Positions 8,557 to 57,120 of a DNA stretch of 64,000 nucleotides are shown here, piece by piece. Within the stretch, counting starts at the first letter, position 1. Each line of letters starts with the position of its first letter. The stretch is from sequence record MH460460.1; one strand, 5' to 3'. Under the pieces are notes generated by a model, which was not told the DNA's origin, ran no database searches, and saw nothing but the letters and a program-made list of their open reading frames with translations. The position numbers were made by a program, and so were the translations under genes.

Positions 8557-8812
8557 TCGACTCCACCACAAATTGAATTTGGTTGTTAACTCGCACCGAC
8601 GCGATTCTCTTTCCTGATTTACAGAAAAGACCGTTCAAGATCCCCACAAGATCTGTAACGTGACTACCAGACGTAGCCGCGTAAACTTCAATGTCATCCG
8701 GAATGTCATTCGGATTTAGGTGCCACAAAGTTCGTAGCACCGCATTGAAAGTTTCTGAACGTTCGACGAGGTTTCTGTTTAAGAATGTGCAAACGTCTTC
8801 GATACTAATCAT
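8543..8812 (-). CDS. Hypothetical protein
   Basis: 89-aa ORF coupled between polymerase and clamp. Confidence 0.6.
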   Translation of the reverse strand: MISIEDVCTFLNRNLVERSETFNAVLRTLWHLNPNDIPDDIEVYAATSGSHVTDLVGILNGLFCKSGKRIASVRVNNQIQFVVESNEKV

Positions 8813-11800
8813 TTCATCGCAAGCCTCTTCATCGCACGGCCTAGCTTTTTAGAACTGATTTTGATTTTCTCTTTGACTGGAACTTCTGCTTTCGCTTGAG
8901 ATTTCTTCCACTCTTCGAGAAGTTTAAGGTTTTCAGGAATCTCTTTTTTCCATTTCTCAATGTTTTTCGTATCCTCATTGGTCAACGGACATTTCTTTGG
9001 CTTACTGCGCATTTCAATATCGTTCGCCCATATCTGTTTTTGCATCCACGTAGACATGAGGTGATATTGATCGTTCATGATGCTGTCGAGAGTTTTCTTA
9101 ACATCAAGATCTTTCTCGCCGAGTTCATCACGTTTGATTTCCAGACCTTTCTCCAGAATATCAAACAGCGCCTGATAGCTGAAATCCCAACCCTTAACAT
9201 CTTTTTCCGTTGCACCGATTTCAAAGTCGATTTCCGGAATGGATGTGAATTCAAAACCTTCGTGACGTTTCTGAACTACTTCAACTACTGCGCTTGTCAT
9301 CGCACGTTCAATCATATCCAGTGCAAGGAAGAACCAATCGTAATGACAGTCAACGGTTAAGGAGTCATGCACCGAAACGTTGAGAACGAAATCAGGATAC
9401 ACGCCGTTCGCTTCCCAATATTCGTACTTCATGCGATCAAGAATTCGAATAGCACTCATCATCAAGTCAGAACCAAAACCCTGAACAGGTGAGTTTACTG
9501 CGCGACGATCACACGACGCATAAACGTTATCCGCATCGCTATGCTGTTTAGGCAGCATGAATCCCCACAAGTGGCGGCGACGACCGACCGGAGATTCCAC
9601 GAAAAAGTTTTTGTGCGCGAATCGTTTGATTGCATCGAACCATTTCAGACCAACCGGGAAACGTTTAAGGAACTTGCCTTTGATTTCCACGATCTCATCA
9701 ACTTCGCGTCCGGTACTCTTCGCCAGACCTTTATCCCCTTGCTGATAAATCAGACCAAAGATAACTGTCTTAACTGCGTTACGAATTGATTTCGTAACTT
9801 CCATGATATCAATACCAAAGAAGTATGCAGCGTTGATTTTATGAACGTCACCTTCAACTTCGATTCGGTGTGCAATCCATTTATCCGGAACAGTACGATA
9901 ACGACGACGCAATATCGCGCCCTGTTCAAATACATCAGCAACACCCTGATCGCCAGATATAATTGACCAGCCGCGAACTTCGTGCGCAGAGTAGTCCACC
10001 TTAATGAGCATACGATTTTTACGCGCAATCAAAATACGCTTAATCAGTTTACCCATTTCAGAACGACTAGGTACTTGCTGCAAGTTTGGATCTTTCGCAG
10101 AAGTACGTCCGGTTACAACTCCGAGATAACCATATGACGGACGAATTGATCTGTCATGTTTGAAGTCATCGCTTTCGCCCCACAATTTAAGCAGGCTGTT
10201 AACGTAAGCGTTTCGGAGTTTGTACGCCTTATTAAGTTTCGTGAACAGCGCAACCATCGGATTATCAGCGTATGCTGCTTGGAAATCTTTATCCAGTTTA
10301 CCAAATGGTTTTCCGTTCGGACGAATCTTGTCGCTCTCCTTCAACGGCTTGAGTTTCATCACGTCGAAGAAAAGAATCTGCTTGTGCTCTTGCGAACTCA
10401 AATCAAATTTTTGAACATGCACTTCGCCCATCAATCCAAACTTCGGAATGTTGGAATCCTTCAAAATGATTTTGTTTGCTTTCGCTACTTCCGGACTGTC
10501 TAAGAATTCACGCTCAACGTTTTTGATTTCTTGGTTGATTGGACTGTTCGGAAGATTCAGTTTAAACAGATAATCAATGTCAGCGCCTGCGCCTGTACTT
10601 TCCAGAATACTAAACGCATGGATCTGATCGCTAATCTGTTGACTGACCATCGACTCATATTTGTCGTAGCCGATATCTTTCGCACGTTGAATTTGTTTCT
10701 CATGAATCAAGAACGGAATGATAACGTCAGCGCCTGCGTATTCCTGAACCTGTTCATCAAGATCTACGTCAGCAATTGTTGCACGTTGCGCTTTACCAAA
10801 CGCAAGATCCAAATACAACTCACAACCGTATTGCATCGTGAGGTTAGCTAAGTTGTAATAACCTTTGCCTGTTACCAGTTGGAGTGATTTCGCATTCTCA
10901 TCGAAAGCAAACTCACCCGCCTGAACATCCCACACATCAGATTTAAAACTGCGTACACCGAAGTTACTACGGATAACGTTTAAGTCGAACTTTGCGTTAG
11001 CGTAGATCTGATATTTGTTTTCGTTCTTCTCGAAGTAATCACGGAAGTCGCGCGAAATCTTTTTCAATTCTTTTGGACTGAAAGGACTGTCGCGATGGAA
11101 CACCGGAATCACATACGCCGTCTTGCCGTCCATACAAAACTGAACAGTAAGAACTTTGTTTACGATGCGATTAAGGTTTTCCGTTTCGGTATCCACTGCA
11201 ACCTTTTCGGCTACAGCCAATTCCTTCATCAGCTTTTTAAACTTGCTGTACTTCGTGATGTACTTGAGATTCCAGTTACGATCTTTTCCGCTCGTTACTT
11301 TACGAATCTTGTACGGCATTTCACAATCGTTGAACCACGGCAACATCCAACGCGCCATGTAACCCAACGTGTAACTGGTTCCCACAATACTACGTGGATG
11401 CAGAACGCTGTTATAACTTACGTTCGGCAGATGTTTAAATTTGTGCGATACTCCATTCATTTTTATTCGTGAAGGAATGATCACACCGTACCAGTTACTG
11501 ATATCACCTTTCGCATCATACGCACGCTGAATCTTTTCTTTGTTCAAACAGTGGAACGGTGCGCTACCAAAAGTCAAAACGATTTCTGGTTTGTACTCAA
11601 CGATGATTTCTTTGATACGTTTACCAAACGCTTCTTCGGCGTCTGCTTTATACTGATCTGACTTGTCGTAAGTTTTAAACATGTTGAAACTAACAACAAG
11701 GAAGTTCCAATCGTCAAGCGTAGTTTTTAACGGGAACGTATCTTCCAGATACTGAATCTGATTCAAAAATGTTTGACCAGTTACACCGCTAAAAATCTTT

Positions 11801-11964
11801 CCGTTTTCCAGATCTTCGGAAGGCATATGGTCAACAACAATCAGGGCTTTGCGTGCAGACTTTTTATCGGCGACACCTTTAAGGACACGGACGAAATCAT
11901 ACGTCTGTTGATCCTCGAATTCCTTCGGTGCGTCATAGTCGAGAGTTAAATGTTTTGTTTTCAT
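8809..11964 (-). CDS. polA: Family A DNA polymerase with N-terminal UDG-like domain and 3'-5' exonuclease
   Basis: Exo I DTETE; TGRTSAKDPNLQQVP; motif A DYSAHEVR; motif B RNAVKTVIFGLIY; motif C VHDS; N-terminal UDG-like segment (IFSGVTG...LHP). The track start is TTG 11973; ATG 11964 is more likely. Confidence 0.95.
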   Translation of the reverse strand: MKTKHLTLDYDAPKEFEDQQTYDFVRVLKGVADKKSARKALIVVDHMPSEDLENGKIFSGVTGQTFLNQIQYLEDTFPLKTTLDDWNFLVVSFNMFKTYDKSDQYKADAEEAFGKRIKEIIVEYKPEIVLTFGSAPFHCLNKEKIQRAYDAKGDISNWYGVIIPSRIKMNGVSHKFKHLPNVSYNSVLHPRSIVGTSYTLGYMARWMLPWFNDCEMPYKIRKVTSGKDRNWNLKYITKYSKFKKLMKELAVAEKVAVDTETENLNRIVNKVLTVQFCMDGKTAYVIPVFHRDSPFSPKELKKISRDFRDYFEKNENKYQIYANAKFDLNVIRSNFGVRSFKSDVWDVQAGEFAFDENAKSLQLVTGKGYYNLANLTMQYGCELYLDLAFGKAQRATIADVDLDEQVQEYAGADVIIPFLIHEKQIQRAKDIGYDKYESMVSQQISDQIHAFSILESTGAGADIDYLFKLNLPNSPINQEIKNVEREFLDSPEVAKANKIILKDSNIPKFGLMGEVHVQKFDLSSQEHKQILFFDVMKLKPLKESDKIRPNGKPFGKLDKDFQAAYADNPMVALFTKLNKAYKLRNAYVNSLLKLWGESDDFKHDRSIRPSYGYLGVVTGRTSAKDPNLQQVPSRSEMGKLIKRILIARKNRMLIKVDYSAHEVRGWSIISGDQGVADVFEQGAILRRRYRTVPDKWIAHRIEVEGDVHKINAAYFFGIDIMEVTKSIRNAVKTVIFGLIYQQGDKGLAKSTGREVDEIVEIKGKFLKRFPVGLKWFDAIKRFAHKNFFVESPVGRRRHLWGFMLPKQHSDADNVYASCDRRAVNSPVQGFGSDLMMSAIRILDRMKYEYWEANGVYPDFVLNVSVHDSLTVDCHYDWFFLALDMIERAMTSAVVEVVQKRHEGFEFTSIPEIDFEIGATEKDVKGWDFSYQALFDILEKGLEIKRDELGEKDLDVKKTLDSIMNDQYHLMSTWMQKQIWANDIEMRSKPKKCPLTNEDTKNIEKWKKEIPENLKLLEEWKKSQAKAEVPVKEKIKISSKKLGRAMKRLAMK

Positions 11965-12028
11965 ATCGCCCAATGGTCAAATAGACAATCACCCTAGTTA
12001 TTTACAGATTTCCAGACCAACTTAAAAT

Positions 12029-22143: not shown

Positions 22144-23304
22144 TTAGTTAATACGATAGCGAGTGTTGACCCAAATACTACGGTTCCCAACAGTCGCCCA
22201 TTTCGTTGTCGGACTGTTTGTAACACCGAGTTTACCGAGACTGCGAGCACCATCAATAGCGCTACCGCCTTGAGATCCGTCGCCGTCATTAATACCTGCT
22301 TTCGAAAGCAAACGTTTTAAGTTTGTGATTGGCCCTTGAATCTGAGTTTCGATTCTTCCTAATGCAGCTTCAATACTAGGAGTTCGATCCATATTCAAGT
22401 TAACAACCTGACCAGTAAAATCGAAAGCCATCTGTCCTTCTGCCTGCAACTGAGCGGATAGCGCATAATAACAAGCGCACGTAACCCAACCATCTAAAAT
22501 CGTGCCTTGCATATTGGTTCCCCAAAAACCTGTAACGCGAGGGCCAATCTGATTGAACAAAGCAAGACCACGAAAAAGATAAGTTAGAATATCTGCCGTT
22601 GTGTATTCCAATTCAGGAATAACATTCTTTGCGCGTGCCTTATCAATATGATCTTCGACGAGGCTTGCAGCAATAAGAATTTGCGGAGTGACAGCCCACA
22701 ACTTAAACGTATACAAACGCTCGCGCTTGCGTTTATCGTTGTAGTGTTTCGCAATGAACGACATAGGTTCCAGACGATAACTTGCAGCCCACAAAGGAAT
22801 TCGAAACGCACAAGTTTTAGCACGGTTCGCCGTCATTTGGATTCCAGCAGTTTTGTGATTAACGTTATCAATAAGAATTTCGTTGTTCACAGAAATCTGA
22901 AACTTCAACGTGTCTTTTTGCACGTTCAAATGGAAAGGCAACGTAACGTCAAACATTGTGTCTTCGCCGAGCAAACAAATAATATCTGTAGCACGGTTTT
23001 CCTGAGCAGGTTCAACGATGAGTTCTGATTTAGAACGAACCGGGCCTTCTTCGGAATCATAACGCCAGTTGATGACAAGTTTTTTATCATCAACCAATCC
23101 GAGATCCGGAATCGCTAAATCCGCAGTCCATCCACCGGGCGTTTCGGAAGTGGTAGCAACTACTTCCGCAAGAACGTATCCATCAGACGGATCAACGAGA
23201 GTTACAATTGGCCCCATGCCATCAGCAAGGGGATAAAGTGGTTCGTTGAAATCATCGAGAAAGACTTCATCGACAGAGACAACGTTACCTTCAACAACGC
23301 GCAT
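22144..23304 (-). CDS. Putative virion structural protein
   Basis: 386-aa ORF with beta-rich N-terminus and helical C-terminus; role is inference. Confidence 0.5.
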   Translation of the reverse strand: MRVVEGNVVSVDEVFLDDFNEPLYPLADGMGPIVTLVDPSDGYVLAEVVATTSETPGGWTADLAIPDLGLVDDKKLVINWRYDSEEGPVRSKSELIVEPAQENRATDIICLLGEDTMFDVTLPFHLNVQKDTLKFQISVNNEILIDNVNHKTAGIQMTANRAKTCAFRIPLWAASYRLEPMSFIAKHYNDKRKRERLYTFKLWAVTPQILIAASLVEDHIDKARAKNVIPELEYTTADILTYLFRGLALFNQIGPRVTGFWGTNMQGTILDGWVTCACYYALSAQLQAEGQMAFDFTGQVVNLNMDRTPSIEAALGRIETQIQGPITNLKRLLSKAGINDGDGSQGGSAIDGARSLGKLGVTNSPTTKWATVGNRSIWVNTRYRIN

Positions 23305-23306
23305 TG

Positions 23307-24404
23307 TTATACCTCTGTCAGATTAATATAAGCAATCAAGTTTTTTAATTGCTCATTATACGAACCGGTAACGAACGCTTTCGCCATCGCGTTATGATTC
23401 GAAGAAAGATATTGCACGATCTTCGATTGATACTCCGGAAGGTTTTGGAAGTTCTGCATCAGTTTGTAGAAGAATGCGCGAGTAAAGTTTACACGGCCTA
23501 CCTGATTCGCTTCCATTTCCGAAGCATCTTGCGCTTCACCTACAAGCGCATAAAGCGCGGCGTAAAGTTCTGCGCTGTCTTCCGGATATCCAGTTGCGAG
23601 AGTTGCGCTCATTTTCATGAAGCCTCGCGAGAGGAAATCAACAACTTTCGTTTCCACATATTCAGTTGCAGTCTTACCGAGATCCGGCAAGTACAAACTA
23701 TTGCTCAAATACATGAGATAGTAGAGCGGAAAGTTTTTATCCAGAAGATCAGGCGAAAGACAAACAGAGTGGCGTTTCCAAATTTCCAAACTGTATTGCC
23801 ATTCGTTGTAAGGAATATTTCGCACGACATGTTGAGCAGTTTGATCGCGGAGCATATCTGCCATCGTACTGATATCATGCGAGACGTAAGCAGGAGTGAA
23901 AGCAGGAGACGTAACTGTTTGCACATAGTTGCGCGTTACCATTCCGATTGTGTTGTACAACACATTCAGAAATTCAATCCCGTTTCCATTCAAAGCAAAC
24001 GCGTAGGAACGAGGAACGCAAATAGTTAAATATTCATTCGCATTTTTCTCGCCCCACAATCTCCAGTACCGAGCCATTCCGATTGACTGTACTGGCGCAG
24101 GCAACGTTCTGTTCTGCCGTGCTTTCAAGCAGAACGTAAACACCAGACCGCTATCAATCATTATGAGAGAAGGATCTGGAATGCCTGAATATCCCATAGA
24201 CATTTCATTGTCGGGTGAATAGACGTTCACTAAACAGAAGTTTTGTTGCAAACGAAAAGGCGCTTTCGCCTCAATCATTTCTTCGATAACTTTTTTCAGA
24301 ATCGGAGCAACAATATAAGGCGACGCGTTTTTCATTTGGTTCGGTCTGTACTGACCGACATAAGCACCTTCTTTGAACGTCCGATCTACTTTTTGGTAGA
24401 GCAT
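23307..24404 (-). CDS. Hypothetical protein
   Basis: 365-aa ORF in operon. Confidence 0.65.
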   Translation of the reverse strand: MLYQKVDRTFKEGAYVGQYRPNQMKNASPYIVAPILKKVIEEMIEAKAPFRLQQNFCLVNVYSPDNEMSMGYSGIPDPSLIMIDSGLVFTFCLKARQNRTLPAPVQSIGMARYWRLWGEKNANEYLTICVPRSYAFALNGNGIEFLNVLYNTIGMVTRNYVQTVTSPAFTPAYVSHDISTMADMLRDQTAQHVVRNIPYNEWQYSLEIWKRHSVCLSPDLLDKNFPLYYLMYLSNSLYLPDLGKTATEYVETKVVDFLSRGFMKMSATLATGYPEDSAELYAALYALVGEAQDASEMEANQVGRVNFTRAFFYKLMQNFQNLPEYQSKIVQYLSSNHNAMAKAFVTGSYNEQLKNLIAYINLTEV

Positions 24405-36333: not shown

Positions 36334-36585
36334 TTATTTCCCCAACGCATTCTTGATTTTAACAACCATTTCCGGATGAGCGATAATAACGTCATGCACC
36401 ATATAAACTTTATCCGATGGAACACTGACAGTATTAGAAGTTTTCAGCCGGAATATTTTCGCAACGATTTGCATAAAGCGATTGCGCTGTACAGGAACAA
36501 CTTTGCTTTCAGTGAGCAAGGGATCAGAAATGATCCGATAACCCTTAAACAGAACAGGGTTATCAAGAATGCTTTGAACGCTCAT
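36334..36585 (-). CDS. Hypothetical protein
   Basis: 83-aa ORF coupled to sbcC. Confidence 0.6.
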   Translation of the reverse strand: MSVQSILDNPVLFKGYRIISDPLLTESKVVPVQRNRFMQIVAKIFRLKTSNTVSVPSDKVYMVHDVIIAHPEMVVKIKNALGK

Positions 36586-38885
36586 CAGATTTCCTTCTTA
36601 GTAAGGACTGAAATGCCTTTGGTCTTTTCGACTGTCCACTGCTTGTCAGAAAATTCTTCAACAGGCTGCGGAGTAAGCCAATAGATGTTAGGCACTACAC
36701 GTTTCAAAATTGGTAAGAAGTTTTCGATCAAGTGATCGCGAACAGCAGGACTACAGTTTGATTCCGGCTCATCCAGCACAATGAAATCAGGTCGGCGGTT
36801 TTCCGGAACAAACGGAAGAATACTTATCGCCCACAACAAACGGAAGCAGTTTGTTTCTGCGCCGCTCATAATACTGAAATCAGTTGTGGTTCCATTACTC
36901 AAACGAGTTACTTCCGCACCGATACCTTGAGGACAAGTGAACAAGCGCCACTGCATAGGTTCCGGATAAACAAGGTGGCTGTTCTCGTTTAGTTTATCAC
37001 TGATCAATTGGAGACGACCTTCCATCGCTTCAAGTTTCAACGCGGTGCCACTGTATGCTTTATAAAGCGTTTCGTACAGCACGCGCTTATCAATCAACGG
37101 TTGGAGTTTTGAAAGTTTGGTACGCAGATCAACAAGCGTATCTTCGTAGTGATCGTATTCCTGAACTTTTGAAATAACTTTCTGCGCACTGCGCTCAAGT
37201 TCGCCGATCTGCGAAGTGAGTTCTTTAATCTGCGCATCAACGCTATTGTATTCCTTTTCAATTTCCTTCGCGCTTTTCGAAGGTTTCTTGAATGCTTTCA
37301 ACGACTGATTAAGATCGCGGAATTCTTCGAGTCGGGCAATACGCTTCTCGATATTCTTGCACGGTCTTTTCGGTTCGTGAACTTGTTCCGGCTTCTCCAG
37401 AGATTCCAGCTTAACAAGAATAGCGTCGCGCTTCTTGATAGTCTCAAACTCTTCGGCGATAGCATCAATCTTCGCACTGACTTTCTTCAAGCGCTTTTTC
37501 AATTCGTCTTTGTCGTGTTCTGGTTTAGAAACTTTGTTCTTTTCCAGATCGCGCAATTCAGATTTGATTTCGTAATACTCTTGCTGAGAGCGAATATCTT
37601 TAATCAGAGTTTCCGCTTTATCGGCAGCGCGTTTCATTGCACGCAGGTCAACGTCCTGTCCACACGTAGGGCAAGTTTTGCCGTCAACCTTATGAGAAAG
37701 TTTTTCGTAAGCACGAATGATACTCTGCGCTTCTGCCAATTCCTCATCCAGTTCTTCGGATTTTTTCTTTGGCTTTTTCAGTTTGGAAAGTGATTTGGTT
37801 AAACGCTTAACGTCGTCCTTCCATTCCTGATACGCTTCGAGTTCTTCTTCGATGGTGTTTAGAAGTTCTTCAATCTCTTCCTCTTCATCAACAAGCTTCG
37901 AATGCTTTTTAGAAAGCGCTTTCGGATCAGCTTCGGATTTTGGAAGTTCTTTTAGTTCTTCTCTCAGTGCTGCATGACGCTTGCGATATTTTTTGAGTTC
38001 AGCTTGATAGTCTTCAAACTTCTCAATCTTACGCAGGATACCTTCGAGATTTTTCAATTCCTTTTTCGGATTATCAGAAACAACACCGAGCTTTTCAATC
38101 TCAGAAAGAATGTCGTAATAACGACGAGCATCTTTTCGTTCGGACGTAAGTTCTGCGAAACGTTCATACAGTTCGTTGCGCTTCTCTTTAAGTTCGTCGC
38201 TTTTCTTCACAAACTTTTTCGCTTTCTTGCGCGTGTCGTCTGTTACTTTCAATGCTTCTTGTTTTCGCGCAGTCACATCATAGATATCTGCTACGCCTTT
38301 GCTTTCCTTCTCCGCATCTTTGGCAGCGTCCAGTTTCAATTTGACTGCGGCACGAATACGATCATAAACATCCAGACCAAACAACTCTGTCAGATATTTA
38401 AGACGTTCAGCAGGCTTCGCACGCTGGAAAGGGTGAGGCACTTGCGTTTGAATATAGCAGTAACTATAAAACTCATCCGGAGAAAGAGGAAAGTGTTTTT
38501 TGATCCACGTCTTCGCAACGTCCTGACGATCAACTTTCTGGTCTTCGCCGTTCAGATAAACTTTATATTTGCTTGCCGTCTGTTCAACACGCACCAGACC
38601 ACCAAGCGGAGATTGCCACTCAAGAGTTATCGAACTTCCTTTCTTGAGCATGTTTGTTTTGCTGCGCTTTGTAAGAGCAAGTGGATCTGCTTCGTACAAT
38701 AAATTCGGCAGCGTGCCAAACATCAAACTTTTACCGACGCCGTTTTTATTATCTCTTACGTTCGGGCTATCGTTGTTGATTCCTGAAACAGTTACGAAAC
38801 CTTGTTTGTCCAGATTTTTGAGTTCCAGTTCCTGATACACAACAACGTTTTTTAACTCAATACTCTTTAGCGAGATACCGGGCAT
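36585..38885 (-). CDS. sbcC: SbcC/Rad50-like SMC ATPase
   Basis: Walker A NGVGKS, zinc hook CPTCG in a coiled coil, signature MSGAE, Walker B VLDEP. Confidence 0.92.
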   Translation of the reverse strand: MPGISLKSIELKNVVVYQELELKNLDKQGFVTVSGINNDSPNVRDNKNGVGKSLMFGTLPNLLYEADPLALTKRSKTNMLKKGSSITLEWQSPLGGLVRVEQTASKYKVYLNGEDQKVDRQDVAKTWIKKHFPLSPDEFYSYCYIQTQVPHPFQRAKPAERLKYLTELFGLDVYDRIRAAVKLKLDAAKDAEKESKGVADIYDVTARKQEALKVTDDTRKKAKKFVKKSDELKEKRNELYERFAELTSERKDARRYYDILSEIEKLGVVSDNPKKELKNLEGILRKIEKFEDYQAELKKYRKRHAALREELKELPKSEADPKALSKKHSKLVDEEEEIEELLNTIEEELEAYQEWKDDVKRLTKSLSKLKKPKKKSEELDEELAEAQSIIRAYEKLSHKVDGKTCPTCGQDVDLRAMKRAADKAETLIKDIRSQQEYYEIKSELRDLEKNKVSKPEHDKDELKKRLKKVSAKIDAIAEEFETIKKRDAILVKLESLEKPEQVHEPKRPCKNIEKRIARLEEFRDLNQSLKAFKKPSKSAKEIEKEYNSVDAQIKELTSQIGELERSAQKVISKVQEYDHYEDTLVDLRTKLSKLQPLIDKRVLYETLYKAYSGTALKLEAMEGRLQLISDKLNENSHLVYPEPMQWRLFTCPQGIGAEVTRLSNGTTTDFSIMSGAETNCFRLLWAISILPFVPENRRPDFIVLDEPESNCSPAVRDHLIENFLPILKRVVPNIYWLTPQPVEEFSDKQWTVEKTKGISVLTKKEI

Positions 38886-39858: not shown

Positions 39859-40536
39859 TTACTCCAGAATATTTTCGGTACGCGGTTTAAACGTTCCTTT
39901 GTTTCCGATTGCAGATTTGATTTGCGTAGGAGAGAACACAACATAGAAAAAGTGTTCGCCACGTTTCGCAATGATTCCATCTTTCCCGGTTGCGGCTGCA
40001 AACACTTCCGGGAAGCGCCACGATTCCGGCTCACCTGCGTAGATATCATGAAACAGATTATTGCCAGCGGTAATAACATCCATGCCAACAAAGTTATCGA
40101 GATATTCTTTCTTCGCGTTCGCCAAACCTTGATATTCAATATCGTAGTTTTGTGCGAGAAACTCATTGAAGTGAGGACGAGTTAAACCGTTTGCGATTTT
40201 GAAAGCCTGCGTGTAAGTAAGGCGCGGCGGCTTTTCGAAAATGATCGGCTTCGTGATTTTCAAATAGACGGGCATTGTGCTTCCGCTATCTTTGGTATAG
40301 TACCGAGCGAATTCAGGACTATCCGTGAAATAAAATCCAATGCCGTATTCGTCGTTGCCTCCACCCAAACGCTTTTTATCGAAGGTGTCGAAATTTCCCG
40401 GCGTGCCATGATAGACAACGAGCGGATTACCTTGCGGATCTTTGACAACTGATTTTCCAAACCACTTGTCGAAGGCTGCTTGATCTTTTGAAGTGAAGGC
40501 CGAAATAGGCTTCGACAAACTTATTAGAAGTTCCAT
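39859..40536 (-). CDS. ART-PolyVal-like ADP-ribosyltransferase-fold protein (start revised to ATG 40536, MELLISLS)
   Basis: FDKWFGKSVVKDPQGNPLVVYHGT...GIGFYFT...PVYL...DGI...VVFSPTQIKSA matches the ART domain of phage polyvalent proteins. Confidence 0.75.
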   Translation of the reverse strand: MELLISLSKPISAFTSKDQAAFDKWFGKSVVKDPQGNPLVVYHGTPGNFDTFDKKRLGGGNDEYGIGFYFTDSPEFARYYTKDSGSTMPVYLKITKPIIFEKPPRLTYTQAFKIANGLTRPHFNEFLAQNYDIEYQGLANAKKEYLDNFVGMDVITAGNNLFHDIYAGEPESWRFPEVFAAATGKDGIIAKRGEHFFYVVFSPTQIKSAIGNKGTFKPRTENILE

Positions 40537-46169: not shown

Positions 46170-46191
46170 AAAAAGCCTCCGAAGAGGCTTA
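46170..46191 (-). terminator. Rho-independent terminator
   Basis: AAGCCTC-TTCG-GAGGCTT plus U-run. Confidence 0.85.
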
Positions 46192-47346
46192 ATCCGTGCC
46201 GAATTTCACATCAAGAAATTCCATCCTATCGTATTGAACAGTAACACCGTAAACCAACGGAGATATACGAACGAACGAAATTCCTCGAATAGTCAGATCG
46301 TGACGCACACCGCCAATAACTTTCCGTATGGCGATATCTTTGGCTTTACCGACAGTCAATGAATTCTCATGCAGTTTAAAAGAGTCTTTCACATAGAACC
46401 GACCGAGATCTCTTTTAAAACTTAGGTCATTATCGAACTTTAGTTTTTGCGTGTAGCCATTCAACGCACTAACAATCAGACTGCGCGGAACATCAGTGAA
46501 CTTTTGATCTGCGCGAATCTGCGTGGCAAGTTTGCCACTGATTTTATCTATGCGTTTCGGCGCACGATTGCCGAGGGATTTGAGATAGTCGCGACAAGCG
46601 ATTAAGGTTCCGTGAAATGCTGCACAATATCTTTCTAAGATAATAGCTTGTTCCGCGTTACACTCTATCTCAACGCAAAAATCGCCTTCCTGCACGGTTG
46701 CAGCATGGCGAGATTTTTCGTTACCCTTTTTCCTGCGTCTTTCGATCATGATCTTGATGTATGCCGACCACGCATAAGATAGCGTAAGCATAACAGGATC
46801 ATCTTCTTCGATTTTGAAATGTTCAATGAACAGAGGAATACTCATGCCAATGAAAATTTCTTTCTCGATGACTGCGTTTCGAAACTCACGCAAATCGTCA
46901 TATCCGTATTTGACGATTTTGTACTTCTTCCTTTCATCCTCAGAAATAGAATCTTTTTGAGGATTGTTATGATACATATCTGCCACTTGAGGCCACGAAT
47001 TAATTTCGTCAACGTTGACCTGCTTAACGATTTCGCGGGCTTCGGCAATTGTGATATCAGGCCAAGTGCGATAACTATTTGTTACGGTGTCGCGATGAAA
47101 AAATTCATACAGCGCCGCAAGTTCATAGATCTCAAGAGGCTTCTCAACTTTTTCGGACTTAGGTTGTTTAGCTTTCGGCTTCGGTTTTGGCTTCTTCGCT
47201 GCAAGAACAGGAGAAACTTTATCCGGCTTTGCTTTGACCTTTTTACTGCGAGTCGAAGCAGGCAGGACTTCTAGCAACTCCTTTTCAAGATCCTCCAACG
47301 CTTTCGTCCGTGCTGTTTTCTTCGGCACGATTAAAATCTCCAACAC
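46189..47346 (-). CDS. Hypothetical protein
   Basis: 385-aa ORF; AATCTGTAAA 19 nt upstream. Confidence 0.65.
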   Translation of the reverse strand: MLEILIVPKKTARTKALEDLEKELLEVLPASTRSKKVKAKPDKVSPVLAAKKPKPKPKAKQPKSEKVEKPLEIYELAALYEFFHRDTVTNSYRTWPDITIAEAREIVKQVNVDEINSWPQVADMYHNNPQKDSISEDERKKYKIVKYGYDDLREFRNAVIEKEIFIGMSIPLFIEHFKIEEDDPVMLTLSYAWSAYIKIMIERRRKKGNEKSRHAATVQEGDFCVEIECNAEQAIILERYCAAFHGTLIACRDYLKSLGNRAPKRIDKISGKLATQIRADQKFTDVPRSLIVSALNGYTQKLKFDNDLSFKRDLGRFYVKDSFKLHENSLTVGKAKDIAIRKVIGGVRHDLTIRGISFVRISPLVYGVTVQYDRMEFLDVKFGTD

Positions 47347-47365
47347 TCTGGTTTACTCTGAATAT

Positions 47366-49003
47366 TTACAGATTTGTCACCAATTGTTTGGCAGAAGAGT
47401 CGAAAGGTTTTTTCACAAACTTAATTCTATCGCTCCGCAATCTTGCGCTGGAAAGTAACGCGCCGTCATGCTCGAATGAATAAACGTGCTTAACACGATT
47501 TTCTTCAATCGCAGAGAACAGAAGATCAGTTTCGATTCCAGTGATCATATGGCTTAAAATTCTCTTCCGTATTTCAGAAGTTATTTCGCCAGACCAACTA
47601 TATCGTGCGCCCACTGCATTTGTGAGAACAAAACCGTCACCACTTTTTCTTGCGCTTTTAATATACGCTTCACACAACGCTTCAAGACTGACAACGATTG
47701 AATGTGTTTCGCGCTCCCAGCGTTCACGAATTCTTTCACACTCCGACGAAATAAGTTTTTCTGTCAAGTGTTCCAGATCTTCGAAACGGACTTTACCTGC
47801 GCGACTTAATCGCCTTAACGCTCGCGAACGACATTCCTTTCGAACACTTGCGCGAATAGATTTCATCGCTTGAGAATCAGCAATAGCAGAACGGCGCATT
47901 GTTCCACCTATACTGAACATCATACCATAAAAACAAATCTTTGTGATTTCTTTAGGTAGATTAAACTGATTAGCGAAATCTGAAATCGAATTTGTTTCAT
48001 TAAGCATTCGGCAGTGAATTTTATGGCGCTGCAACTCCATTTTTAAAATGTTGAGTTGGCTGCTTTGCATATCGACGTTATGACCTACGCAATACGCACG
48101 TTGCTTCAAAGCGCGAGGCAAGTTTTGAAAACCGCCGGACTCTTCGAATAAACGACCACCTAAACCACTGGCACGATATGTCGGATAATATTTGATGATC
48201 AAACGCGAACGTTCAACCAAAATAAAATCCTGCGACAAAAACGATAACAAATTGCTTTGCAGTAAAATAACCCGCGCTCTAATCGATTTCCGTGTATAGT
48301 GACTGTACTTTGCAATTTCGTCAACGACTGGTCGCAAAGAAATAGTGTTTGGACTAAGTTTCGATAGCACATCACGATAACGCTTTATTGCGGTACGCGA
48401 GGTATTGCGATCAAATGATCTTAAATCGTGTTTAGGTGGAGTTAAAGTTTCTTTCCCACGTTGAACACAAATTTTCTCAATCGTTTTTCCAAACAAATCG
48501 CCCTTTGTGAAGTGCGGAGTACAATAACGAATTTTGGTAAGAATATCCTGCGCGGATCTAGGCCGCACCGGGTACATCTTTTCAAATATCTCTTCCTTGA
48601 GTTTAAAACGTCTGCACTGACCATCGCTACCAAAGAAATATGGCGAGGCAATGAAAACATTTTCAATTAACCAATCTAATGCGCGAGAAAAACCTTTCCC
48701 TTTTTTAGCATACGTTCCCTTTGCGCTATAATCCCCGCTTGCGCCAAAAACATGAGGCAATTCCTTTCGACCTAATATTGTTGGAACAGGGATAAAAGGC
48801 ATTTCATTGTTATCGCGAAACGTAGCGCTATACAACGAACAATGAACGATATGCCAAAAGAATATTGATATCTGCTTTCGAAACTCTAACTCCTTATGTT
48901 CTGGCCCGTCATACGGACAAGCTAAAATGACATGTTGATTGACCCAAAATACAGTGTCATATTCCTGTAGCATGGGATTTTTGACTAGAAATGCGGTTTG
49001 CAT
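47366..49003 (-). CDS. Divergent PolA-superfamily (TV-Pol-like) polymerase lacking an exonuclease domain (start revised to ATG 49003)
   Basis: GGRLF...FQNLP, motif A VDMQSSQLNIL, motif B KICFYGMMF, motif C FEHDG; RBS GGAG before 49003 and promoter variant GATCTGTAAA at 49040-49049. Confidence 0.6.
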   Translation of the reverse strand: MQTAFLVKNPMLQEYDTVFWVNQHVILACPYDGPEHKELEFRKQISIFFWHIVHCSLYSATFRDNNEMPFIPVPTILGRKELPHVFGASGDYSAKGTYAKKGKGFSRALDWLIENVFIASPYFFGSDGQCRRFKLKEEIFEKMYPVRPRSAQDILTKIRYCTPHFTKGDLFGKTIEKICVQRGKETLTPPKHDLRSFDRNTSRTAIKRYRDVLSKLSPNTISLRPVVDEIAKYSHYTRKSIRARVILLQSNLLSFLSQDFILVERSRLIIKYYPTYRASGLGGRLFEESGGFQNLPRALKQRAYCVGHNVDMQSSQLNILKMELQRHKIHCRMLNETNSISDFANQFNLPKEITKICFYGMMFSIGGTMRRSAIADSQAMKSIRASVRKECRSRALRRLSRAGKVRFEDLEHLTEKLISSECERIRERWERETHSIVVSLEALCEAYIKSARKSGDGFVLTNAVGARYSWSGEITSEIRKRILSHMITGIETDLLFSAIEENRVKHVYSFEHDGALLSSARLRSDRIKFVKKPFDSSAKQLVTNL

Positions 49004-49463
49004 CCGACTTCTCCAGAAATTCCATCCTCGCCCTTCCAATTTACAGATCTTTTTCCCGAACCCCCGTCGATCCCCAAATTTTTTCTTCACCTTGAAAACT
49101 TACACAACAAACACATACACCCATACAGCATACAGAGCTACCCTAGCGCTAACAACGCAATAGGATATTCAATATAGATAACCGGGGCCCGGATATACAT
49201 GGTAGGAGCGTTAAGTGATCACTATTATAATATGCAGAAATTCATATACCCCACTCTAGGCACTATCTACTGCCTTAGAATGCGATTCTACTCGATCTGC
49301 CAAAAAAGTTTCGGAAGTTTCGAATTCCGGAAAGTGTGTAAAATTTTAGGTAGGTGTTCGTAAGTCATTGATATGTAACAGGAATATTTTTTGCATTGAA
49401 AAACAGAATGAGTAGATCACCATCAAAACTGCGTATAGACAGCGATCTACTCAATGGAATGCG

Positions 49464-51840: not shown

Positions 51841-52536
51841 ATGACTGACCTTTCTACAAATCCACTTCAAAGCAACATTCTGATCGAGGCTTTGCTTGAA
51901 GCACTTTTCAACGCAAAACTTTCCCACACGCATATCGGAAGTTTGCCGAAAACTGCCGAAGGAAAACAACTCGAAGAATTCCAATTCTGTTCTATGTGGG
52001 TAACATACAACAAACTCGTTAAAGACATTCATGAAAATGTTGGCAAACAAGTTTGGCCTATTGTTAATCCTAGTACCGGATGCCGACTCTGCATTCGCGA
52101 AATCAGCACTCAGGAAGTGGACGGTAAACATTTCACGTCATTTATTTTTGCTGTTGATCCTTTGGGCTATGACGCAAATGCCACTCCCGATCCGGTATTA
52201 AAAGAGCAAGTTAGAAAACTGTTTGACTCTATCGAAGAGAAAACTTTTTCTCCGGATGCGGTGTTTGAAGCGCTGGTTGAAAATTTGGGTCTGTCTACTT
52301 TGCGTGTTCCGGAAGGTTCAACTCCAACTGATGCCGCAGGCGCTCCGCTGGATGTTGTTGAATTAAGTCTTCCGTGGTTTGGTCTTACTGAACTAATCAG
52401 GCAAATCAATATTAATTTGGAGAGTCTGACTAATGGCGTGCGAGAAGGAAAAGTTTATATTCTTTCTCTCAAAACAAGTTATGGATCTAAGACCGAACGT
52501 AGCATGACAACTGCAATTGTTGCGTGCGATCTTTGA
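51841..52536 (+). CDS. Hypothetical protein
   Basis: 231-aa ORF. Confidence 0.65.
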   Translation: MTDLSTNPLQSNILIEALLEALFNAKLSHTHIGSLPKTAEGKQLEEFQFCSMWVTYNKLVKDIHENVGKQVWPIVNPSTGCRLCIREISTQEVDGKHFTSFIFAVDPLGYDANATPDPVLKEQVRKLFDSIEEKTFSPDAVFEALVENLGLSTLRVPEGSTPTDAAGAPLDVVELSLPWFGLTELIRQININLESLTNGVREGKVYILSLKTSYGSKTERSMTTAIVACDL

Positions 52537-56011: not shown

Positions 56012-56040
56012 TAAAGGGGGCTTTCGCCCCCTTATTTTTT
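56012..56040. terminator. Likely bidirectional terminator between convergent genes
   Basis: TAAAGGGGGC-TTTC-GCCCCCTTA with flanking A/T runs. Confidence 0.75.
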
Positions 56041-57120
56041 GCCTTTAACTTTTTTAATCTCGCGTTTCCATCCCAACTTCTTAGCCGGAATAAAACATTT
56101 ATCTCCGTGCGTCTCTTTCAGAAATCCTTTCACCTCTTTGATGATACTCAACGGCGCATTATCCGGATCGAGTTTAATCAACTTTCCTTTCTCGTCTTTC
56201 TCTCGCGGCAATTTAAAATGCTTGATGCGGATTAAAGATGACTTGCCAAACTCCGCTGCAATCTTATCTCGCAACAACTTCCCGCCGCCGTCATTATCTG
56301 TCATTGTGTATACGGTACTGACTCCCATCATTTCAACGATGCGTCGTTTCTCTTTGCCAAACTGTTCTGCACCTAAAACAGCTAACGCAGGAATTCCGTA
56401 ACTCAATAACGCAAGCGCGTCGCGTGGCCCTTCAACCAACACAACATACTTCAATTTATATTTCTTCAACATATCACGCACAAGTTGAATCGGGAATAAA
56501 CCTTTTGATTTAGCCCAATCGCCTTGCGAGTTAACATAGCTTGTTCCGTTGATTTGTTTCGTTAGATACGCAGCAACACCGCCGATGTATTTCGTTCCGA
56601 CCTTACATGGAAAGAAACAAACGTTTGTTCCTGTTCGTTGTGCATTCAACAACCCACCTGCTGCACGTACAAGCGATCCCGGATACGTGCGCCACTCAAC
56701 ATCTTCGGGCCATTCCATGTAACTATCACGACGCAGCGCTTTCATTAGCATTGCTACCGTTGAATATGTGCCGACCTTGTTCGCCATTTTATCGTAAGTC
56801 TGACGCAACGCACTGAGAGAGTTTTCTCCTGCGTCTTTCATGCGCCATTCTTTTATTTCCTGCAATCCTGCCTTGCGTGCAAGATCATTCCACGAACCTT
56901 TTTCACCGCAACCGAAGCAATGAAAAAATCCCAAAGGAATTTCCATGCCAACGGAAGTATAGATTCCGCAGCTTGGAGATTTATCGTCGTGGAATGGGCA
57001 ACATACAATGATAGATTCTGCCGCAAACTTTTTATCTCCGGGAAGTTTTGCGATTTCTTCCATTACTGTTTGATGCACGTCACTCATACAATAACCCCTG
57101 TTTGAAATACTAATTTTCAC
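56032..57120 (-). CDS. dnaG: DnaG-type DNA primase
   Basis: CPFHDDKSPS...FHCFGCG zinc finger; TOPRIM VEGPRDAL and DNDGGG. Confidence 0.92.
   Translation of the reverse strand: MKISISNRGYCMSDVHQTVMEEIAKLPGDKKFAAESIIVCCPFHDDKSPSCGIYTSVGMEIPLGFFHCFGCGEKGSWNDLARKAGLQEIKEWRMKDAGENSLSALRQTYDKMANKVGTYSTVAMLMKALRRDSYMEWPEDVEWRTYPGSLVRAAGGLLNAQRTGTNVCFFPCKVGTKYIGGVAAYLTKQINGTSYVNSQGDWAKSKGLFPIQLVRDMLKKYKLKYVVLVEGPRDALALLSYGIPALAVLGAEQFGKEKRRIVEMMGVSTVYTMTDNDGGGKLLRDKIAAEFGKSSLIRIKHFKLPREKDEKGKLIKLDPDNAPLSIIKEVKGFLKETHGDKCFIPAKKLGWKREIKKVKGKK

Follow-up and report, generated by a model that had tools for sequence, protein, structure and literature searches.

TV-Pols were defined in 2008 by Iyer, Abhiman and Aravind as nuclease-less, minimal polymerases of the A-family type, some of which carry an extra N-terminal domain and adjoin resolvases, integrases or IS605/IS630 transposases (PMC2579912). 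They were predicted at that time to be primase-polymerases standing near the enzyme ancestral to Pol I and T7 RNA polymerase, and the Microcystis phage Ma-LMM01 was named as a carrier (PMC2579912). The subject of the present work is the gene of a second, TV-Pol-like polymerase found in a 64,000-nucleotide (nt) window of the genome of Dickeya phage vB_DsoM_JA13 (MH460460.1, 254 kb, genus Salmondvirus), a jumbo phage infecting a potato pathogen. The window is the whole stretch of DNA that was analysed; its coordinates are used throughout and are converted into those of the record by adding 124000.

CcPol, carried by SCCmec, was also listed as a TV-Pol in the original 2008 paper (PMC2579912). As CcPol-MP, it makes DNA primers from deoxynucleoside triphosphates (dNTPs), which offers a precedent for priming by an A-family enzyme (PMC7581432). 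A survey of jumbo phages published in 2021 distinguished five polymerase types, TV-Pol not being among them (PMC7824862).

A Second Polymerase with the Family-A Fold

The gene and the regions of its product are located as follows.

47366..49003, minus strand: complete coding sequence, 545 amino acids (aa) plus stop, for the second polymerase, delimited by the list of open reading frames (ORFs), homologue starts and a GGAG sequence and supported by the ratio of non-synonymous to synonymous substitution rates (dN/dS); record coordinates 171366-173003.
48524..49003, minus strand: N-terminal domain, residues 1-160, alpha/beta and family-specific, from residues invariant in 15 phages, the structure model and the hhalign alignment to gp030 of Ma-LMM01.
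48179..48523, minus strand: helical region, residues ~161-275, with helices 167-182, 203-213, 224-233 and 239-257 in the model and an isoelectric point (pI) of 10.2.
47369..48178, minus strand: palm and fingers, residues 276-545, from motif positions, hhalign to Pol I, conservation and secondary structure.
48152-48154, minus strand: codon of R284, the beta-hairpin Arg that would contact the template, mapping to Pol I R668.
48071-48073, minus strand: codon of D311, the metal-binding Asp of motif A, mapping to Pol I D705.
47939-47941, minus strand: codon of the O-helix Lys K355, mapping to Pol I K758.
47465-47467, minus strand: codon of D513, the metal-binding Asp in the motif C HDG, mapping to Pol I D882.

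From the letters of the window, a first-pass annotation had proposed that this ORF encodes an exonuclease-less, family-A-like polymerase in addition to the replicative PolA, on the basis of five motifs paired with those of PolA. The five motifs do sit at the places indicated and in the PolA order, and their counterparts are found in the true PolA, encoded at 8809-11973 on the minus strand and recognised by Pfam through DNA_pol_A (7.5e-53) plus a 3'-5' exonuclease. Family searches of the second polymerase give no usable match in Pfam, NCBIfam or PADLOC, and PHROGs places it in an unnamed family. Sequence searches of the PDB with phmmer and two profiles return no genuine match either, a weak transketolase hit and a designed helical repeat aligned on the fingers helix-turn-helix being dismissed as spurious. 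Pfam DNA_pol_A likewise fails to match the window protein, gp030 of Ma-LMM01 and 69 distant relatives, none of the 69 displaying any Pfam polymerase family.

Structure comparison, as proposed in the first-pass annotation, is more informative. The AlphaFold model built on ten homologues reaches a mean predicted local distance difference test score (pLDDT) of 80 and yields 96 Foldseek matches in the PDB at E<=1e-3. The best 50 of these 96 are all family-A DNA polymerases (Taq, Bst, Klenow-type and mycobacterial Pol I fragments) with a probability of 1.0. Alignments cover 300-480 columns, and 400-450 for the Klenow-type fragments. The template modelling scores are low, about 0.3, which is attributed to the extra N-terminal domain and a differing domain arrangement. 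In a library of viral structures, the matches are relatives of the protein itself, one of them in Erwinia phage Yoloswag (15% identical), together with many phage PolAs and virophage primase-polymerase-helicase proteins. In the model, D311 stands at the end of strand 308-312 and D513 within hairpin 507-517. As modelled, the fold is thus shown to be that of a family-A polymerase, a right hand with an RRM-like palm and with fingers inserted behind the first strand of the palm.

The pairing of motifs is reproduced independently of the model by hhalign. Indeed, a 150-sequence family profile aligned with a 3-sequence PolA alignment (E. coli Pol I, T7 gp5 and the window PolA) over 204 columns with E 2e-5, pairing R284, Q293, D311, K355, Q/T488-G489 and H512-D513 with Pol I R668, Q677, D705, K758, Q849-G850 and H881-D882, respectively. 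A shallow 10-sequence profile compared with the window PolA aligned just the helix preceding motif C (E 0.61). The first observation, a second set of family-A-like polymerase motifs with no exonuclease, is therefore confirmed by these comparisons, and the core identification as a TV-Pol-type polymerase beside PolA and DnaG is supported.

The N-terminal part requires a finer division. It had been described as a basic region of ~290 aa of unknown nature, which holds for residues 1-160, still unassigned, whereas residues ~161-275 are better read as the thumb, and basicity is a property of the whole protein (pI 9.7), residues ~161-275 being its most basic segment. The latter are probably the thumb because they are helical in the model and lie within the 400-450 columns aligned to the Klenow-type fragments. 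Residues 1-160 carry residues invariant across 15 phages and, modelled alone on the 15 phage sequences, reach a pLDDT of 78; a Foldseek search of the PDB with this domain finds no solved fold, the best match having an E of 0.31, with faint PadR- and KH-like resemblances. A vestigial exonuclease or a known DNA-binding fold was considered for this domain and dropped on that result. The lack of an exonuclease is borne out by both the Pfam searches and this structural comparison.

Conserved Residues and Departures from Pol I

A profile search over 1.84 billion representatives retrieves 308 proteins at E<=1e-3, 67 of them at E<=1e-10, mostly 450-700 aa long. The ten members looked up all come from metagenomes or read archives, and the sole name given to any is "hypothetical protein". 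Conservation was counted in an alignment of 150 representatives, mostly 15-30% identical to the window protein, in which the motif residues are 90-100% conserved. Loss of the catalytic Asp residues in homologues had been named as an outcome that would contradict the polymerase assignment; D311 is kept in 146/147 and D513 in 139/141 of these distant sequences, so that the assignment withstands this check. R284 (145/146), K355 (148/148) and E491 (142/142) are also near-invariant, as are Q293, K300, N309, N462, G489 and G514. Position 351, that of the Arg in the RxxxK motif, is variable (V49, K30, R20, E20) and occupied by Lys in the window protein, K355 being invariant.

Several positions that shape the active site depart from Pol I. 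The steric-gate position (Klenow E710) is Gln in 129/147 sequences and His in 15/147, the Klenow F762 position is Tyr in 103/148, and the Klenow Y766 position, equivalent to T7 RNA polymerase Y639, is Phe or Met. Gly replaces Klenow E883, and the helix preceding motif C gains an invariant Glu, E491. The active site is read from these residues as DNA-polymerase-like with altered sugar selection.

With Pol I enzymes (Klenow, Taq, Bst, T7 gp5 and the window PolA), the protein shares the fold, the motif order and the equivalents of R668, D705, K758, Q849/G850, H881 and D882. Unlike them, it has no 3'-5' exonuclease, its thumb is shorter, E710 is replaced by Gln or His, Y766 by Phe or Met and E883 by Gly, and E491 is added; the similarity of sequence is detectable profile to profile only. 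T7-type single-subunit RNA polymerases belong to the same superfamily, share a motif C devoid of the third carboxylate and show that the fold is capable of starting chains de novo. The window protein differs from them in having no promoter-recognition domain, no specificity loop and no Y639 equivalent. When T7 RNA polymerase is compared with the family profile by hhalign, motif C alone aligns (E 0.13), with no match past it, and no RNA polymerase is found among the top 50 structural matches in either the PDB or the viral library.

Membership in the TV-Pol Family

The assignment to TV-Pol relies on Ma-LMM01. A family hidden Markov model run over all ORFs >=80 aa of this phage gives a single match, gp030 (506 aa, E 4.2e-44), and hhalign of gp030 against the family gives 99.8% probability and E 2.3e-28 over 402 columns, beginning at residue 4, so that the N-terminal domain is shared. 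The gene of gp030 adjoins the IS200/IS605 genes tnpA and tnpB. The split PolA (gp178 and gp180) and the DnaG (gp134) of Ma-LMM01 are recognised by Pfam and unmatched by the family profile. By elimination, gp030 is the published TV-Pol, since it is the sole non-canonical PolA-like protein of Ma-LMM01, and the strength of its profile link to the window protein bears out the TV-Pol-type label of the first-pass annotation.

The minimal TV-Pol set is present in the window protein, with a putative thumb, the Arg hairpin, a two-Asp palm and fingers, and no fused or linked nuclease. Distant members are found in mobile surroundings: one lies beside an integrase and ParA, and another beside a Cro/cI-type (helix-turn-helix) repressor and an integrase. 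A genome scan adds 14 bacterial loci in Rhodothermales, Desulfobacterales, cyanobacteria and others; at the two of these 14 whose neighbours were scanned, the gene is accompanied by a DDE transposase and an AHH toxin at one and by a type I restriction subunit at the other. As the homology to gp030 and these mobile-element neighbourhoods fit the 2008 description, the window gene is placed, on sequence comparison, in the branch of TV-Pols bearing an N-terminal domain. The gp030 homologue (22746-24266 in locus L026, and eight further records) is kept with 96.8-99.8% identity in all nine records found for this group of Microcystis phages and is always annotated as hypothetical, which suggests that gp030 is a resident phage gene and not a recent passenger of the adjacent insertion sequence (IS).

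The two phages thus compared have much in common. Both polymerases are nuclease-less and minimal, with full-length homology, an N-terminal domain, the beta-hairpin Arg, two palm Asp and the fingers Lys, and both phages encode PolA, DnaG, a clamp loader and a resolvase. Unlike in Ma-LMM01 and other TV-Pols, the JA13 gene is fixed and syntenic in a clade of jumbo phages, has no adjacent recombinase or D5-type helicase and is linked to a non-coding region of about 460 nt that exists, with the gene, as two exchangeable alleles. The search of its neighbourhood in the window for a linked D5-like helicase, integrase, resolvase or transposase was negative. The N-terminal domain is alpha/beta in the JA13 model, whereas an all-helical one was predicted for TV-Pols (PMC2579912), and the Arg of the RxxxK motif, which the TV-Pol description lists along with a conserved fingers Asp, is not conserved in the JA13 family.

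As in CcPol-MP (PMC7581432) and in the pairs formed by PolA and single-stranded DNA-binding protein (SSB) (PMC10061031), an A-family domain is found here outside normal replication, with no working proofreader and a proposed or demonstrated role as chain starter. CcPol is near bacterial Pol I, keeps E710 and F762 as well as a partial exonuclease relic, has MP, a partner of the oligonucleotide-binding (OB) fold, and belongs to an operon with a helicase. The window protein, by contrast, escapes the Pfam model of PolA, carries Gln and Tyr at E710 and F762, possesses its own N-terminal domain and has no partner or helicase detected beside its gene.

Limits and Integrity of the Gene

The reading frame runs uninterrupted through 574 codons (47366..49090, minus strand). 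The ATG at 49003 is the start in ten aligned homologues, a GGAG lies at 49014-49011 with a spacing of 7 nt, and the promoter-like motif described below falls within the longer reading. For these reasons, the gene is taken as 545 aa, and the limits 47366-49003 given by the first-pass annotation are correct. In GenBank MH460460.1, the C-terminal 284 aa alone are annotated, as JA13_200, and 1.2 kb are left blank; annotated homologues measure 405 aa in JA11 and JA33 and 545 aa in JA29. The short JA13_200 is a problem of start-codon calling, with no frameshift, and the full-length reading corrects this truncated annotation. Between JA13 and JA29, the gene displays 80 synonymous and 16 non-synonymous differences (dN/dS 0.047), a pattern which indicates a working gene held along its entire length by purifying selection.

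An Exchange Cassette Including the Upstream Non-Coding Gap

The gene does not vary alone, and the following features surround it.

46903..49463, no strand assigned: exchange cassette existing in two deep allelic types and comprising, besides the polymerase gene, the gap before it and the opening ~142 codons of the gene that follows (46189-47328).
49004..49463, minus strand: 460-nt non-coding gap preceding the gene, 394-503 nt long in the 15 related loci measured.
49409-49453, minus strand: long hairpin with T-run after the upstream gene, from a terminator scan.
49360-49372, minus strand: block ATCAATGACTTAC, conserved across both cassette types.
49336-49347, minus strand: block AAAATTTTACAC, conserved across both cassette types.
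49312-49329, minus strand: short hairpin with T-run, from a terminator scan.
49039..49050, minus strand: promoter-like motif AGATCTGTAAAT, a one-mismatch variant of AAATCTGTAAAT that ends 36 nt before the start codon.
47364..47375, minus strand: exact AAATCTGTAAAT for the downstream gene, overlapping the last codons and the stop of the polymerase gene (..T-N-L-stop).

When JA13 is compared with JA11, the flanks are 96-98% identical in DNA, whereas 46903-49463 shows little or no similarity: the polymerases share 47% protein identity, the middle of the gap is unalignable and the downstream gene diverges over its first ~142 codons. A second backbone displays the same arrangement, L045 and L004 being 97.9% and 94.7% identical in the flanks and the break opening at the stop codon of the upstream gene and closing ~150 nt inside the downstream one. 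The left edge, at this stop codon, is the same in both exchange events, whereas the right edge, inside the next gene, differs. The allelic types were observed at window 46903-49463 and at loci L016, L004 and L045, and within one type the cassette diverges at the rate of the backbone. Sequence divergence thus indicates two old alleles of gap plus gene that are shuffled among backbones by homologous exchange. The new element of this work is the cassette itself, in which the gap is joined to the polymerase gene and to the 5' portion of its downstream neighbour, and whose two deep allelic types have replaced one another in two backbones.

A tract of low divergence is superimposed on this pattern. 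Between JA13 and JA29, only 8/500 positions differ at 48800-49299, which covers gap and the 5' end of the gene, vs 5-7% elsewhere, and this tract suggests a recent recombination patch. The 98.4% identity of the proximal gap in this pair had been considered a mark of constraint, a view withdrawn as the tract extends into the coding region. A further swapped gene lies at 51841-52536 on the plus strand, with 38-46% protein identity between phages whose flanks are 96-100% identical, including in the comparisons of JA13 with JA11 and with JA29; it has no family match.

The gap contains several small elements. One of the conserved blocks reads AAA(A/T)TTTACA in 10/10 phages aligned; the blocks were considered as repeated promoters, and this was rejected since each occurs once in the window. 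All three copies of GAGTAGA in the 64-kb window lie inside the gap (49287-49455), two of them forming the arms of the long hairpin, and the gap of the related phage L004 holds three copies of TGAGTAGA; both boxes could be bound by a protein. An aTGACt-N16-TAAAAT-like element (49303-49372, minus strand) is followed ~20 nt on by the short hairpin and T-run at 49312-49329, and could represent a host-type promoter with an attenuator, the source of a very short transcript or a promoter of the origin type. No Rfam family matches the gap, whose fold z-score is only -1.1 on either strand, which leaves a structured RNA or a known RNA family unsupported, and no credible small ORF is found in it. Distant members of the family also have ~850 nt of non-coding DNA directly upstream, 840 nt in L020 (7162-8001) and 850 nt in L024 (3071-3921), which are a 135-kb phage contig and an integrase-bearing element.

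In lambdoid origin/initiator modules and in promoter-type origins of T4 and T7, otherwise near-identical phages swap a cis site, non-coding or intragenic, along with the protein that acts on it. Compared with these, the JA13 protein is a polymerase and not an origin-binding helicase loader, and the gap is a candidate origin.

Phage Context and a Shared Promoter-Like Motif

The gene order is fixed in 17 related loci: DnaG, resolvase, two conserved unknown genes, gap, polymerase, a variable stretch, a conserved gene classified as peptidase by PHROGs and clamp loader. By tblastn, the polymerase gene is present in 41 phage records, and no empty site was seen among these records and the 17 syntenic loci. 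The gene is shown to be fixed, syntenic and constrained across a clade of Erwinia, Dickeya and Yersinia jumbo phages. The DnaG mentioned by the first-pass annotation is indeed encoded, at 56032-57087 (minus strand), and a RuvC-type resolvase and nucleases lie near the polymerase gene. Family searches of the neighbouring genes revealed no SSB and no helicase, and the downstream gene 46189-47328 is not conserved beyond the genus.

The motif AAATCTGTAAAT has 20 matches with <=2 mismatches vs 12 expected. Its copies stand 16-47 nt upstream of many gene starts, often after a terminator hairpin, and have no conserved -35-like partner. Sites of this type occur at 12000 (PolA), 27779, 28418, 42472 (clamp loader), 47364, 49039, 57136 (DnaG), 62277 and others, and by its distribution the motif looks like a phage promoter class. 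For PolA, the clamp loader, DnaG and others, the distance of the copy, exact or with one mismatch, from the gene start is 16-36 nt. The polymerase gene had been credited with its own promoter variant, and AGATCTGTAAAT at 49039-49050 is indeed AAATCTGTAAAT with one mismatch; this site would function as the promoter of the gene. CTGTAAA likewise precedes the gene in most related phages. As the copy at 47364 overlaps the last codons of the polymerase gene, it accounts for the C-terminal Asn-Leu conserved in close homologues.

Two other genes of the region deserve mention. The ORF 36585-38885 (minus strand, 766 aa), annotated as "putative exonuclease", has weak coiled-coil-type Pfam matches only; it was considered as PolA and rejected, the true PolA being 8809-11973. 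A conserved gene of 225 aa just past the clamp loader bears an ART-PolyVal (ADP-ribosyltransferase-like) Pfam domain (L045 16481-17158, L046 16013-16690) and corresponds by synteny to about 39859-40536 of the window.

Proposed Function and Alternative Explanations

The explanation put forward here, which may well hold and may just as well fail, is that the protein is a catalytically competent, proofreading-less TV-Pol acting as a specialised starter of DNA chains with a linked upstream site. The polymerase would be made alongside the replication proteins from the same promoter class, and its N-terminal domain and basic thumb would hold a template in the absence of a primer. It would then start or restart DNA synthesis de novo at particular sites and hand over to the replicative PolA, while DnaG would handle routine lagging-strand priming. 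dNTPs would probably be used, given Gln/His at E710, Tyr at F762 and Phe/Met at Y766, unlike in T7-type RNA polymerases. The gap DNA, always co-travelling with the gene, would hold the site of action or regulation of the enzyme, forming with it a pair with origin/initiator-like specificity. Such a site is the most economical reading of the gap because gap and gene always travel together in two allelic types. We infer the primase or initiator function from this ensemble, the replication-type promoter motif and the co-exchange of gap and gene lending circumstantial support to an initiator or otherwise specialised role.

A more ambitious version, considered unlikely, makes gap and TV-Pol a self-contained, exchangeable origin-initiator module, in which the N-terminal domain would recognise the gap, a de novo start would fire replication of the 254-kb genome and the two alleles would represent incompatible specificities. 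If true, this would make a polymerase the replication initiator of a tailed phage and would be the first function assigned to this TV-Pol branch.

Several points weigh against the chain-starter explanation. The phage already has DnaG, so that any priming role must be specialised. As of 2020, CcPol was the sole TV-Pol assayed (PMC7581432), and it is much closer to Pol I, keeps E710 and F762 and requires its OB-fold partner to prime (PMC7581432, PMC10061031), which makes it a weak proxy for the branch of the window protein; family searches reveal no evident OB-fold partner or D5-type helicase beside the JA13 gene. Gln at the steric gate is, taken alone, no guide to whether dNTPs or NTPs are used, the Arg of RxxxK lacks conservation in the family and the identity of gp030 with the published TV-Pol rests on elimination. 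The co-transfer of gap and gene could just mark where recombination is tolerated, and the similarity of the JA13 and JA29 gaps may reflect a recent recombination tract rather than constraint.

An alternative regarded as rather doubtful is a primer-dependent, specialised DNA polymerase that does no priming and serves in repair, gap filling, translesion or recombination-dependent synthesis, as A-family enzymes devoid of an exonuclease, Pol theta and Pol nu among them, do. The fold and the nearest profile matches are those of DNA polymerases, no proofreading domain is present, a RuvC-type resolvase and nucleases are encoded nearby, and CcPol by itself merely extends primers (PMC7581432), all of which would suit such an enzyme. 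A repair function would, however, leave unexplained the conserved N-terminal domain, the linkage to upstream non-coding DNA and the relatives that are apparently the sole replication gene beside an integrase or ParA. The replaced steric-gate Glu would favour another option, a minimal single-subunit RNA polymerase that would transcribe from AAATCTGTAAAT or make an RNA primer at an origin, like T7 and mitochondrial RNA polymerases. The short phage-specific promoter-like motif would give it a target, its motif C reads HDG without the Glu of the PolA "HDE", to be compared with "HDS" in T7 RNA polymerase, and group 3 jumbo phages, reported to have no RNA polymerase subunits or sigma factors (PMC7824862), would have a use for one. 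This RNA-polymerase option looks less likely and is held to be quite improbable. Indeed, RNA polymerases are absent from the top structural matches in either library, the profile match to T7 RNA polymerase at motif C alone (E 0.13) compares with E 2e-5 for PolA, and the Tyr that reads the 2'-OH (T7 RNA polymerase Y639) is Phe/Met here. Moreover, a protein of 545 aa is too small to accommodate the N-terminal promoter-binding domain and the specificity loop that T7 RNA polymerase possesses, the motif precedes the polymerase's own gene, and the record lists a DksA/TraR-type factor, pointing to the host enzyme (PMC6143709).

The mobile relatives raise the very doubtful prospect that the gene is the replication gene of a selfish cassette residing in the phage with little benefit for it. 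The family was originally described from transposons and integrative elements (PMC2579912), its Ma-LMM01 member adjoins IS200/IS605 genes, bacterial relatives stand beside transposases, toxins and restriction-modification genes, and the cassette has been exchanged in two backbones. In the window, however, no integrase, transposase, resolvase or terminal repeat is found in or beside the cassette, and the right edge, inside the next gene and differing between events, is what homologous exchange predicts and not transposition. No empty site is seen for the gene, which keeps its position throughout the 17 loci and turns up in 41 phage records; purifying selection on it is strong (dN/dS 0.047), and its homologue is likewise fixed in the nine Microcystis phage records. 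Finally, a chance resemblance of motifs or an inactive relic would be compatible with the absence of Pfam, NCBIfam and PDB sequence matches, but this explanation is effectively refuted by the fold and profile-profile matches, the near-invariant catalytic residues in 150 distant sequences and the same dN/dS of 0.047.

Significance for the Family and for Jumbo Phages

The gene adds a member, hitherto unannotated, to a family that is known but uncharacterised. Its branch comprises at least 308 clusters at 50% identity, has no Pfam model and is annotated just as "hypothetical protein". It now has a fixed representative in jumbo phages of a culturable clade, which also encode PolA, DnaG and a clamp loader, and since these enzymes are already present in the phage, the role of the TV-Pol must be a specialised one. 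Between the near-identical phages JA13 and JA11, this gene and the upstream non-coding DNA account for essentially all of the difference, and this natural two-allele system makes the function of a TV-Pol testable.

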